Assembly: GCA_025594325.1 (NCBI GenBank)
Contig: JANHCV010000001.1
Coordinates: forward strand, 496,001-560,000
Length of the DNA: 64,000 nt
Direction: 5' to 3'
DNA from: Blastocladiella emersonii ATCC 22665
Taxonomy: Eukaryota > Fungi > Blastocladiomycota
Of the stretch, positions 58,988-64,000 are shown one piece after another. Positions within the stretch are counted from its first letter, which is position 1. Each line of letters begins with the position of its first letter. Both the position numbers and the translations under genes were made by a program. The notes under the pieces are model-generated. The model had not been told where the DNA came from. It searched no databases and saw only the letters and a list, made by a program, of their open reading frames with translations.

Positions 58988-60261
58988 GACGTTGTGCGGT
59001 TGGCGGGCGCGTACTTGTGCACGTGCCACTCGCCCTGGCGCTGGCTCGGCTCGAAGCCGCGCGGCGGCGGGCCCGACTCGTAGCCCTCGTAGCGCGGGTC
59101 GTGGTTTGGGCTGAACTCGCCCCACGGCCGGATCGGGCAGCGGATCTCGTTGTGGCCGGTGACCTTCTTCTTGTCCTTGTAGATGCACCACTTGCACTTG
59201 CGCAGGCGGTCGTCGCCGGTGCGCGGGCGTTTTGGGTTGCCGTGGACGTGGTCGTGGTGGTTGGAGCCGCGGTCGGTGCGGGAGGATGATGATGAAGAGG
59301 AAGAGGACGACGACGAGGATGCCGACGGCGTGTTGGACTCGTCGTGATGCTTGCGCTTACCGGCGCCCGACGAGGTGCGCGGGACCCACGAGTGGTCGCC
59401 AAACTCGTCCTGCAGCTTCTCGCACAGCGCCTCGATAGTGGGCGTCTTGCTGCAGGCGCGCGAGATGTGCGACGCGACCGCCTCGCTCTGGCCGTCGAAC
59501 TTGGCTCGGAACAGCGAGATGATCTCGTCAATGCGCAGGTGGGTGCCGGGAATGCACGCGTCGACGAGCGAGATCTCAGCGCGGAACGCGGAGGCGAACG
59601 TCTTGGCGGACGGGAAGGCGCCGGGGCGGAGGTCCTTGAGCTTCTTCATGGCGCGGTCGCGGCGCTCAACGAGTACGTCGAGGTTCTGGTACTGGTCCAT
59701 CATGTGCGCCCACACGTCGCACGCGTGGGGGAGGTGCGTGTAGGCGGCGCTCGACGAGTGGTGGCCCATGAGCAACAGCAGCTTGTCGCGGATCATGGTG
59801 TCGAGATTCGAGAAGTGGATGATACTGGCGTTGTTACCGGCGAACGTGACCGTGTTGAGCGTGGTCGGGTCTTTCTTGATGATGCAGAGTTGCTTTCTGC
59901 AGAGTAGACGGTGCTTGATCTCGTCGGCGGGGAAGTCGATCCAGCCGTCGGTCAGGCGCCACGTAATCGGGTCGAAGGCGTCCGATTGCTCGGTGGGCAG
60001 GGAGTAGCGCCAATCGATGCCGGTCGTGACGACGGGTGCCGGCGAGGTAGACAAGAAGGCGGCGGCCGCCGCGGCGGCGCGGGCGACCGTCGAGACGATG
60101 GTCTCCTCGAGGTGACCCACCTTGGACTTAGGGTTGGTGGTCTTGAGCTCAGCCGCCTTGAGCTTACCGTCGGCGACAGCGAGTGCGTCGGCCGAGGTCT
60201 GCGCGCGGTGGCGGGCAAGCGGTGCCCGTCCCCACGGGCTTTGTTCACGGGCCGCTGTCAC
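58963..60261 (-). CDS. copia gag (UBN2-like capsid region + CCHC knuckle); 5' end uncertain
   Basis: ACDVWAHMMDQY helix typical of copia gag; CKWC-x10-H-x4-C near the C-terminus. Confidence 0.8.
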   Translation of the reverse strand: MTAAREQSPWGRAPLARHRAQTSADALAVADGKLKAAELKTTNPKSKVGHLEETIVSTVARAAAAAAAFLSTSPAPVVTTGIDWRYSLPTEQSDAFDPITWRLTDGWIDFPADEIKHRLLCRKQLCIIKKDPTTLNTVTFAGNNASIIHFSNLDTMIRDKLLLLMGHHSSSAAYTHLPHACDVWAHMMDQYQNLDVLVERRDRAMKKLKDLRPGAFPSAKTFASAFRAEISLVDACIPGTHLRIDEIISLFRAKFDGQSEAVASHISRACSKTPTIEALCEKLQDEFGDHSWVPRTSSGAGKRKHHDESNTPSASSSSSSSSSSSSSRTDRGSNHHDHVHGNPKRPRTGDDRLRKCKWCIYKDKKKVTGHNEIRCPIRPWGEFSPNHDPRYEGYESGPPPRGFEPSQRQGEWHVHKYAPANRTTSGNGRGEQ

Positions 60262-60343
60262 AAGGCGCCTTGCTTGCGCTCCTTGGACCGCGTATTAACG
60301 TTCTGCGTGCCGTCAATTGTAGTCGTAATCGCTCAAGCATCTC

Positions 60344-63158
60344 CATCGGGAAATGGGGGGTCACCCCGCTGCGGTGAACTTCGAAGATCTTCTTAGATTA
60401 CTGTGATCTAGAGAGATCTTGGGTCTACAGAAATCTAAACTCACTTTTGCGGTTCGCGGCGAGACCAGTACAAAGATCTCGGGTGAGCATCATAGATCTC
60501 CAAGTGACTCTCGAGTGAGTGATCTACAACTCTTAAATGGGAATCTCGGGCTTACTGAGCAGCCACGGGAGAAATCGTGCGCAATGCGTTCATCGCTGTA
60601 TGATCACAGCTCTGATCGACACTGGCTTCCACGTGAGCGGCGCAAAATCTCAAAAAAAAAAAAAACCTGAGGCATTCCACATCTCTTGATGGATAAAGCC
60701 ACCTTCAACGAACCATTCACAGGCTAACTAGCACTAGCGACGCTAAGTAAATTGCTGCTCATCAACGAACTGAGTGCGTGAAACAGGGACAGTACTGCAT
60801 AGACGGGTGTGCCAAGGCTTGATTCTTGATTGCCGCTTCCGGCGAGTGAAATCACGGTAGCGCGGGCGAGGGAAGACAGGTGATGGCCCGCTTGCAGCCC
60901 CACGCTCAAGAAACAACGGTTTAACAGACACCTGTCTCGTGGAACCATCGTTCATCACGACAGCTCTTGCGCACATCAATCAATCGTCGAAATTGAACTG
61001 ATGGATTGTGGCTGTTGCGACGTGACACAGCCAGGGACGAGTGTTCCTCTGAAGCAAGCCCACGCCGTATGACCGCGTGGATGTGTTGAAGCTGGAACAA
61101 GTAGAGCGTGAATCACCTCAGACACCATTTCAGCATCGGTCGTTCGCACGTTGTTTTTGCGTGTTGGGACTTGCACGGCTCAATCAAGCGAACGAGGAGC
61201 ACTGGGAACGTGCTACTGAAGGGCAGGGAGGAAACGGCGAAGCGCGACGATACCATTAAGCTTTCGGTCGATAATGGACCTCTATGAGCATTATCTGCAG
61301 GATTCTAGTGTTCAGGGCCGCGCAGCAGGCCGGGCTGAGCAGAGTCGGCCGCGATCCGGGGCTGCTCTGGAGGCACTACGCCGCGGGCCTGTGCGGTCCA
61401 TGTGTCGGTGACTAGGGGAATACAGCGTTTCAGTGATGCGCTCATAAGGCGTGTGCTGTGGGTTTCCGGCGAGAGAGAAAGGGAGCGGATCCGGCGACGC
61501 GACGACGCGGTGCACGGGCAGAGTGCGACGTTCACGCGCACGTGCGGATCGGCGCCACACGCTAGCGCCCGTTTTCGGCGCCAAGTCCTCCGAACGCCAC
61601 CGCCCGCCTTCGCCGCCGCCGACTTCCTCTCTCTTGTCAACCGCTCGTCCTTGCGCTCAACTCCTCCACAAAGCATTCAACTCCATGCACTTGCTCCGAA
61701 ACTGCATCTTCTCCTCCGCTATGGGCCCCCATCGGGTATGCGCCGTACTGTCCTTGCGCCGTCGTGTGTGCGCCGCCTTGCCACCTTGCACGGCTGCCGC
61801 CGGCAGACTCAACCTCGCGCCGCTCGCCGCCGCACCGGTCCTCCCTTACAATACCGATGCTTCTCCTCACACCCTCGCTGACTAGGTCCCGCTGCGGCTG
61901 ATGCTGAGCGCTCGACCAGCCAACGCCACCCTTACTTCTCGCGGTCGCCCTGATCGCCCCTGACGTGGGCGACGTGGCTGCGTCCGTCAATCCAGTCACC
62001 CTGACCATCTCGAGCTCGTGACGACCCGCAGCCGCACGCTCATGGCTCCTCGTGTCGTCGCCGTCATCGCGATCCCGCATGACATGTGGCGCGTGTGGCA
62101 ACGGCGCCTGGCGACCGCAAGCACGCGGTTCTGCTTGAGGTCACGTTCGGCCTGACCCGCTGGGCAACGACGTACGTGTGCGGCCGTCCGATTCGGACTG
62201 TCACCTCGCCACGATCGGATTCTGACCGCCCCGCCTACAGAACCTACGCCTGGGACATCATCAAGCCTTTCTTGCCCACATCATCCTCTCGTGCAACCTC
62301 GGCGACCCCGTCCCGCTCCTCAACTCGTGCGTGTTTTCTTCGCGTATCTATTCGCGCTCACTAACGTCACCGCTTGTCAACGAAGCATATTCGCTTGGCC
62401 CGATACTATTCGCCGCCGTGGATCGACTCAGAACTGTTCACCCGCTCGCCAACACGGTCCCGCACTACGCGGCGCACTGGTACGCGCTGTGCGCAGCGTT
62501 GCGCTGGATTCGAGGTTCACGATCTCGTTACACCCGTGTAGTTTGATCCTGTGACTCACGCACACGTCGAGGACGCCAATTCGGGCACGATGGACCTCCA
62601 CCAGTTCCGCTGCACGCACCTCAACACTCAGCTCGCAAGCATCAAGTGTGGCGCGATTGTTCAACCACCTCCTCCGCGTGGCCGAGCGCGACTTTGGGCG
62701 TCGAGTGGCCGTCGTCGCTTAGACCTCTGCGGAGGGCTTCACAGCCCTCAAGGATGTGCCGACCAGCCGAGGCGCAAAACTGCGGGGTTCCTCCGTGAGC
62801 GACGACGATTTGTGGCGTGTGGATGACGCTCGGAATAGATCGTGGTTTTGCTCACTAGATATCCTGTTGCCTACTGAAATCCCTCGGAATTGGAAGAGAT
62901 CTCTTGAGGTGCGCGAGATCTGAGCAGGCGCAATGGATCTGCTGGCGCGAAAGGAGCTGAGCTGGGACCTACTGGAGGTATAGATCTGTGCGAGATCTAT
63001 GGTAGATCTATGAGAGATCTATATTCGACACGACAAGAGCAATATATTACTCGTGATCTAGTGGATTACTCGCCCAGCCATTTGGGCCACCTCCACCCTT
63101 AGATCTATGGGAGATCTAGGTAGATCACTGAGAGATCTTCGCCCCCAATTTCCCGATG
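60344..63158. mobile_element. Putative TIR DNA transposon (2.8 kb, probably non-autonomous or decayed) with CATCGGGAAAT termini, 2-bp flanking TC and AGATCT-rich subterminal arms
   Basis: CATCGGGAAATGGGGGG at 60344 and the reverse complement of CATCGGGAAATTGGGGG ending at 63158 (16/17 match); TC at 60342-43 and 63159-60. Confidence 0.75.
62086..62720 (+). pseudogene. Degenerate spliced gene inside the TIR element (introns 62172-62240, 62327-62385, 62480-62541)
   Basis: Canonical GTACGT/GTGCGT/GTACGC donors, CTGAC/CTAAC branch sites and YAG/AAG acceptors. The last exon is homologous to 63655-63936. Confidence 0.6.
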
Positions 63159-63328
63159 TCGATGTACGTGTTTTCTTCGTCACAACCCGGCGGTGATGCT
63201 GGGCGGACGCGACTGCCGCCACATCTATGGCCGCGGCTTGTCGCTGCTGCTCAAGCAGTGTATGGCCATCATCGCAAAGGTGGTTTGCACCAGCTTGACG
63301 CGGCGGTTGCGAGTCGCGGCCAGCGCGT

Positions 63329-64000
63329 CATCGGGAAATTGGGGGTCAAGATCTCAAAGAAATCTAGCTAGATCTCTCATAGATCTTAGGGTTTCGGGGG
63401 CCAAAATAGCTGGGGAAGATCTAGGTAGAAATCCACTGCAAACCTATGTTTTCTATAGATCTCACCATAGATCTATCCCTCCCGTCCAGCCGAGCTCGAC
63501 TCCGTCAGGGCCGATAGATCTTCGCAACGAACGTAGATTCCCCGCCGACGAGGAGATCTGTGAGGTTTTCAAGCGATCTTCGCCAAGCGATAGATCTCAG
63601 CACACAACGGGAGAGTTCGATGAGTTAGAAACAGATCTGTATTGTGCATCAAATCTACGCGTCGTCGTCGTCGTCGCTATCCAGCGCGACTCCGTACGGA
63701 CTCGCGCCTTGGGCACCCGCCGCCGAGGCTGCGGTTGCAGCGGCAGCGGCAGCGGCGGTGGACTTGGTGAACGACCGGCGCACGACCTCCTCCATGATCA
63801 TGCGGACAAACGGGTGAGCGGCCCGGCGACGCTCGATGCTCGCGACCAGCTAGTGGAAGTAGCTGCGGCGGAACATGTCGACATCCACGATGGGCGCCGC
63901 CGGCCCCTGCACGTACGACTGGACCACAGGAGCAAACTACACAGACACGTCGGGGCGTGAGCTACGAAGCGAGTCAGGATCGTGCGCGACGCGTACCAGC
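63329..64000 (-). mobile_element. Right end of a second, oppositely oriented member of the same TIR family, continuing beyond the window
   Basis: 63329-63392 matches the reverse complement of 63095-63158 at 55/64 nt; AGATCT arrays extend to ~63640; carries the homologous last exon 63655-63936 and intron 63937-63996. Confidence 0.75.

Follow-up and report, generated by a model that had tools for sequence, protein, structure and literature searches.

What kind of sequence lies between the inverted repeats at positions 60344-63158 of a 64,000-nucleotide stretch of the Blastocladiella emersonii ATCC 22665 genome, and what could have moved it there? The stretch (hereinafter the window) corresponds to C1:496001-560000, where C1 is contig JANHCV010000001.1 of assembly GCA_025594325.1 (32.65 Mb, 21 contigs, designated here by C and a number), and its G+C content ranges from 59 to 74%. 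We found that 60344-63158, hereinafter referred to as element 1, is a real, non-coding cut-and-paste transposon with a precise 2-bp target-site duplication (TSD). It represents a new family within a kind of element that is already known, not a new kind. An earlier note, made from the sequence of the window, had described an unrecognised DNA transposon family with terminal inverted repeats (TIRs) at this position. The features of element 1 and of a second element beside it (element 2) are as follows, in window coordinates.

60342-60343: left TSD copy of element 1 (TC); a single TC is present at all four paralogous empty sites
60344-63158 (C1:556344-559158), plus strand: element 1, a 2815-bp non-autonomous TIR transposon, defined by TIRs, TSD and empty sites
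60344-60360, plus strand: left 17-nt TIR, CATCGGGAAATGGGGGG, from sequence reading, genome matches and the inverted-repeat pair
60361-60381, plus strand: left-end-specific 21-nt insert TCACCCCGCTGCGGTGAACTT, with a short TCACC/GGTGA palindrome, found in all left ends of the family
60385-60499: left subterminal region with AGATCT sites that start at 60385, 60414, 60474 and 60494 (motif count)
60652-60665, plus strand: A14 run, specific to the element 1 copy
61597-62458, plus strand: internal stretch with homology to the 2.48-kb family (identity about 72-74%), non-coding in the tests applied
62897-63138: right subterminal array of nine AGATCT palindromes, several of them 11 bp apart (repeat scan and motif count)
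63142-63158, minus strand: right 17-nt TIR, CATCGGGAAATTGGGGG on the minus strand, from sequence reading and genome matches
63159-63160: right TSD copy of element 1 (TC), from flank reading and empty sites
63159-63328: 170-bp piece of host repeat between the elements, with paralogues on C20, C15, C4 and C5; the GT at 63327-63328, its final 2 bp, is a TSD copy of element 2
63329-64000, minus strand: start of element 2, a member of the 2.48-kb family, right-type end first; its ends pair, with GT on both sides

The 11-mer CATCGGGAAAT occurred exactly at 60344 (+), 63158 (-) and 63329 (+), as stated in the earlier note. These three matches compare with 0.42 expected in the window, and three matches were reached in one of 100 shuffles. 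The TC on both sides of element 1, the A14 run and the asymmetry of the ends had been read correctly as well. At the left, the 17-nt TIR is followed by the 21-nt insert and then by CGAAGATCT, whereas the right TIR abuts CGAAGATCT directly, without the insert. The insert was kept in every left end of the family, including one on C16 that is treated below. The hairpin that had been seen in this insert was not supported: its single-stranded fold (-4.4 kcal/mol, z -0.39) was equalled by 61 of 200 shuffles, and the "hairpin" amounts to a 5-bp palindrome. AGATCT sites were concentrated at the ends of element 1 (four in the left 160 bp, nine in the right 260 bp). Elements 1 and 2 together contained 23 of the 31 AGATCT sites in the window, and the remaining 60.3 kb contained eight.

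Both elements sit in a multi-copy host repeat (window 60211-60343 and 63159-63321), of which at least six paralogues with 80-84% identity were found on C4, C5, C15 and C20. The left-flank matches of element 1 and those of the 170-bp spacer overlapped by exactly 2 bp in six paralogues or more. For an empty-site test, the window minus each element and one TSD copy was aligned with four fetched paralogues (C20, C15, C4 and C5), and all four ran uninterrupted across both insertion points. A single TC was present at the first site in all four, in accordance with the prediction of the earlier note. At the second site a single GT was present in three, and the C5 copy had GC. Because of these paralogues, the boundaries and the 2-bp stagger are fixed independently of the ends themselves. 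Element 2 ends at C1:561811, 1811 bp beyond the window. GT lies on either side of it, and the GT at its far end had likewise been predicted. The two elements face each other via their right-type ends, 170 bp apart. Element 2 was 95-97% identical to the other main 2.48-kb copies, and 92% and 89% identical to two older ones.

The terminus was searched genome-wide as the 17-mer with at most one mismatch, which gave 38 matches compared with none for the reversed 17-mer used as a control, so that it is not confined to this locus. The ends paired into elements as listed below.

C1:556344-559158: the 2815-bp element (element 1), paired ends
C1:559329-561811, C3:134111, C3:453057, C4:854603, C4:891607: 2.48-kb family (2457-2486 bp), paired ends
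C5:1069092, C6:737633, C15:184179, C12:9961, C19:1590962: further 2.48-kb copies (2457-2486 bp), paired ends
C19:1778927-1784050: old copy of about 5.1 kb, enlarged by a 2.6-kb insertion, paired ends
C3:450160: 140-bp miniature, paired ends
C6:843603: 138-bp miniature, paired ends
C1:606349-606381: 33-bp miniature, paired ends

The terminus CATCGGG...CCCGATG was present in all copies, and the 2.48-kb copies were 95-98.6% identical to each other, apart from the two older ones (92% and 89%). Four more copies (C3:516945, C3:522159, C6:918982 and C12:46335) were exact mirror duplicates including their flanks. Each such pair was entered once, which gave 15 independent insertions. A perfect 2-bp TSD was found in 14 of them (TC, GT, TG, AA, AA, AC, GT, AT, TC, AA, TC, GC, TG and TG), so the consistent pairing proposed in the earlier note held. 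None of the 15 had a 3-bp TSD, and none had TA. The sole exception was the oldest copy, on C19, whose own terminus is mutated. Two nearly 100% identical copies in opposite orientation, C4:854603-857069 and C4:891607-894073, have mismatched flanks, and exchanging these flanks as by an inversion restores TC/TC and GC/GC; this indicates that recombination between them inverted roughly 37 kb. The derivatives of 33 to 140 bp retained the ends only. The shortest consists of two fused ends (CATTGGGAAATGGGG CCC CCCAATTTCCCAATG) with TG on both flanks and, as an internal deletion of the most extreme kind, indicates the minimal ends.

The element 1 variant was the sole copy of its kind in the genome. 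It has in common with the 2.48-kb family 94 bp of the left end, 86 bp of the right end, and about 860-960 bp of the interior (72-74% identity). The rest of its interior was single-copy, except for 432 bp shared with C4:172148-172572. Open reading frames (ORFs) in element 1 did not exceed 159 amino acids, and those in the family elements overall did not exceed 225 amino acids; none had a Pfam match. Indels in the internal common stretch were not multiples of three, and tblastx between element 1 and the 2.48-kb consensus gave similar scores in all six frames. The stretch is therefore read as non-coding ancestry and not as a gene, and the idea of a spliced gene common to the elements gained no support. 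Since no coding capacity was found in the elements, they must be moved in trans. The earlier note had suggested that the longest copy be found together with its transposase. The longest copy, of about 5.1 kb on C19, proved to be a 2.48-kb copy with a 2.6-kb insertion and no Pfam match, and was rejected as an autonomous element. Its insertion (L051:1895-4519) carries a 315-amino-acid low-complexity ORF, also without a Pfam match. A solo left end at C4:172052 was rejected as a fuller element as well; host genes follow it (kinase, leucine-rich repeat protein and VID27), which makes it a truncated copy.

A candidate DDE transposase gene of the CMC type (CACTA/Mirage/Chapaev) was found beside an unpaired left end of the family at C16:196314. 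This end has 118-148 bp in common with the non-autonomous copies and then diverges, and such short sharing is as expected for a master element. The candidate gene lies at about C16:200592-204563 on the minus strand, 5.6 kb inside the unpaired end. Its exons were searched singly. A 483-amino-acid open exon (L053:6084-7535, minus strand) matched PF02992 (Transposase_21) with 45.4 bits against a cut-off of 28.6, and it was the only PF02992 locus in the genome. An exhaustive protein search returned 2724 representatives of related proteins, the best with 39-44% identity; the named relatives came from Blastocladiella britannica (the best named), with the homologue KAI9219666.1, and from Rhizopus. 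The query was aligned with 33 sampled relatives (n = 34). PF02992 was matched in all 34 members and Plavaka, weakly, in two; D271, D363, C382 and C385 were invariant. Colinear alignment with a relative was obtained for the next exon (L053:5557-5979), in which NAHNATH, an H(3)H motif, and YERFN occur. With its D, D, C(2)C, H(3)H and E motifs, the gene thus has the CMC signature described by Kojima (2025; PMC12730594). No Plavaka signal was detected in it even at E = 10.

We consider it possible, with a chance a little short of even, that this Transposase_21 (tnp2) gene drives the family; the link is drawn from its 5.6-kb nearness to the unpaired left end. Several observations weigh against it. 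No intact autonomous copy was found, and no right end was found at the C16 locus with up to three mismatches. Within the interval from the left end to the gene sit a second TIR family, as a truncated copy with CATCGCCGAAACGGCTCC ends, and a further multi-copy repeat; past the gene, on its far side, there is a copia fragment. Adjacency alone is weak because transposons cluster in such nests. The locus is also part of a 10.2-kb inverted duplication including flank, in which the mirrored part (99.98% identity) comprises the left end with 1411 bp of the interior and 8.8 kb of the flank. Just three GATCT sites were counted at the C16 left end, and these are degenerate. The ends of the family are closer in appearance to those of PlavakaB, which has a transposase of another Pfam family, and the published ends of fungal EnSpm are CAC..GTG, with a 3-bp TSD.

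Two related candidates were rejected. The two mirrored ends on C16, 16 kb apart, do not delimit one long element, since identity extends 8.8 kb into the flanks, as in an inverted duplication. On C5, at L059:4421-8186 (C5:1168420-1172185), a PIF1-like helicase ORF is immediately followed by a tnp2-like ORF of 615 amino acids. The tnp2-like ORF scored 17.5 bits for PF02992, below the Pfam cut-off, no family end was near it, and it was therefore not retained as a driver. This ORF is one distant relative of the C16 gene and may be a Helitron or CMC remnant.

Comparison with known systems places the family with good probability in the CMC/CMCT group (CACTA/Mirage/Chapaev/Plavaka). In the scheme of Kojima (2025), the CMCT group comprises EnSpm/CACTA, Mirage, Chapaev and Transib together with Plavaka, ESTA and Lanisha, lineages with 5'-CA..TG-3' termini and TSDs of 2-5 bp. 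The present family has CA..TG termini and a 2-bp TSD (14 of 15 insertions, with exact empty sites). The CMC-like character proposed in the earlier note thus fits the ends, the TSD and the subterminal arrays. The word "unrecognised" was too strong, as the similar PlavakaB was published in December 2025. PlavakaB, so far described from Agaricomycotina only, has CATCA..TGATG ends, such as CATCAGTAAATG and CATCAGAAATTTGG, and TSDs of 2-3 bp (PMC12730594, including Figure S2). The family ends read CATCGGGAAATG/T, that is, CATC followed by G.AAAT-like bases. Their first bases (CATCG/CATTG) agree with PlavakaB at four of five positions, and the later bases resemble the Figure S2 ends in a by-eye comparison. 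Both are fungal members of the CMCT group with TSDs within 2-3 bp. Unlike PlavakaB, the fifth base of the family ends is G (or T after a C-to-T change) and not A. PlavakaB elements are autonomous and 6-9 kb long, whereas those found here are non-coding and range from 33 bp to 2.8 kb. The host is a blastoclad, and the gene adjoining a family end is of the Transposase_21 and not the Plavaka type.

In other respects the family is like EnSpm/CACTA of the tnp2/TnpD type: the candidate is a Transposase_21 protein with D, D, C(2)C, H(3)H and E, subterminal repeats are numerous, and the non-autonomous derivatives share only their ends with the putative master. PF02992 has been placed in CMC (PMC5751038). 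Unlike CACTA in the strict sense (CAC(TA)..(TA)GTG, 3-bp TSD) and fungal EnSpm (CAC..GTG, 3-bp TSD; PMC12730594), the family has CATCG ends and a 2-bp TSD. A 2-bp TSD is also found in Mirage, a CMC lineage. Weak matches to DUF1258 were obtained for the candidate transposase (20.4 bits, below the cut-off of 33.1) and for 20 of the 33 sampled relatives. DUF1258 is a Caenorhabditis family which we take to be associated with Mirage. Mirage is an animal lineage and the family here is fungal. Overall, the ends and TSD give the family the look of PlavakaB and the neighbouring gene that of EnSpm, and in either case it falls within CMCT.

The resemblance to PlavakaB raises another explanation, in which a PlavakaB-type family, still of the CMCT group, is moved by one of the PF18759 (Plavaka-type) transposases of this genome and not by the C16 tnp2 gene. 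The PlavakaB ends (CATCA..TGATG, then G.AAAT-like) and 2-3 bp TSD are the closest published match to CATCGGGAAAT with its 2-bp TSD. PF18759 was matched at C17:1227021, C17:1490044 and C21:1152097, including an uninterrupted 854-amino-acid ORF with 50 bits (L065:4686-7250; C17:1226685-1229246). A further Plavaka-type gene is located at C16:1909377, and no terminal repeats were recognised around any of these genes. Diverged copies were found on C16, C19, C20, C1, C2 and C7, with about a dozen diverged fragments elsewhere in the genome, and fragments come within about 6 kb of the copy C19:1590962 of the family. Against this, neither a family terminus nor an AGATCT array was found in the 10-kb stretches fetched round the three PF18759 loci, nor a convincing pair of TIRs with a TSD, and a Plavaka-type transposase was thus not found between such ends. 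The sole unpaired family end with a distinct interior adjoins the tnp2 gene instead, and the restriction of PlavakaB to Agaricomycotina in the published record (PMC12730594) also counts against the idea. The C16 protein and the C17 Plavaka-type enzyme showed no pairwise similarity. We regard movement by a Plavaka-type enzyme as possible and rather unlikely.

It is improbable that the family belongs to some other or undescribed superfamily, with a transposase that is absent from the assembly or was not recognised, and that the nearness on C16 is a coincidence of clustering. No autonomous copy was found, the link to C16 rests on one rearranged locus, and the second CATCG-initial family (CATCGCCGAAACGGCTCC) likewise overlaps no PF02992 or PF18759 match, all of which would suit such a case. 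However, CA..TG ends, the 2-bp TSD and the subterminal repeats all fit CMCT. The 15 TSDs include no TA, which excludes superfamilies that duplicate TA (Tc1/mariner, pogo, ESTA and PHISTA), and the duplication length excludes those with TSDs of 4-10 bp. That there is no transposon here, and that the copies arose by dispersed segmental duplication or as artefacts of assembly, can be set aside almost entirely. The assembly does contain many near-perfect inverted duplications, and several family copies lie inside them (C3, C6, C12 and C16). Nevertheless, 15 insertions with unrelated flanks remain after removal of duplicates, 14 of them with a perfect 2-bp TSD, and the derivatives of 33-140 bp keep the ends only. 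The exact empty sites and the TSD table refute this explanation.

For the transposon family itself, we propose that a DDE transposase supplied in trans would bind the family ends, and probably the AGATCT arrays too. It would excise the element and reinsert it at a 2-bp staggered cut, and repair of the cut would then yield the 2-bp duplication. The insertions themselves show no sequence requirement in the target. The most likely source of this enzyme would be the only Transposase_21 gene of the genome, on C16. The family consists of the 2.8-kb singleton, about ten independent 2.48-kb copies, and the deletion derivatives of 140, 138 and 33 bp. More tentatively, and with less confidence than we place in the C16 gene as driver, the family may represent an early-diverging-fungal CMCT lineage in which a Transposase_21 enzyme acts on PlavakaB-like CATCG ends with a strict 2-bp duplication.

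DNA transposons have been reported as very few, if any, in Blastocladiomycota, the phylum being represented by one genome (PMC5751038), and the present family adds to this picture of scarce cut-and-paste transposons. It offers precise boundaries and natural minimal substrates, with a 33-bp copy made up of scarcely more than the two ends joined together. Its effect on the genome is evident in the 37-kb inversion between two copies, and its copies show a strong C-to-T bias in TCG context. Apart from these points, it is a matter of ordinary repeat annotation. If the C16 gene is the driver, EnSpm-type enzymes would be linked to PlavakaB-type ends, and end sequence and TSD length would not follow the split between EnSpm and Plavaka proteins. 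The family would then provide a compact, sequence-unbiased system with a 2-bp TSD and minimal substrates of 33 to 140 bp, testable in a model blastoclad.

The base changes were counted in an alignment of eleven 2.48-kb copies. C-to-T and G-to-A changes made up 422 of 827 differences from the consensus, a count in which changes common to several copies are counted repeatedly. Of these changes, 153 were in TCG context, although GCG sites outnumber TCG sites in the consensus (188 vs. 146). At the terminus, CATCGGG was often changed to CATTGGG. The TCG-biased changes look like the outcome of context-specific cytosine deamination or a process resembling repeat-induced point mutation. A metagenome scan for the terminus gave single chance matches without AGATCT arrays. 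Upstream of the host repeat, window 59944-60216 is occupied by a different repeat, with copies of 94-97% identity on C18, C9, C1 and C2.

The second TIR family, with CATCGCCGAAACGGCTCC ends that also begin with CATCG, gave 28 matches with up to two mismatches compared with two for the control. No PF02992 or PF18759 match was found inside its pairs, and a partial ORF and Pfam scan of the interior gave no match. Its members were located as follows.

C4:1290537-1294545, C6:822458-826467, C20:258411-262461: pairs of about 4.0 kb
C7:651205-654093: pair of about 2.9 kb
L053:1916-3120 (C16:197729 onward): truncated copy

Many large near-perfect inverted duplications were observed in the assembly, with spacers from 13 kb to more than 100 kb; they may be real or assembly artefacts. 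Those located are given below.

C16:187515-197724 with C16:211010-221219: arms of an inverted duplication, whose inner edges abut second-family ends
C3 about 486229, C6 about 829548, C15 about 1276631, C20 about 1266406: centres of mirror pairs

In addition, contig C12 (58,780 bp) appears to be entirely palindromic.

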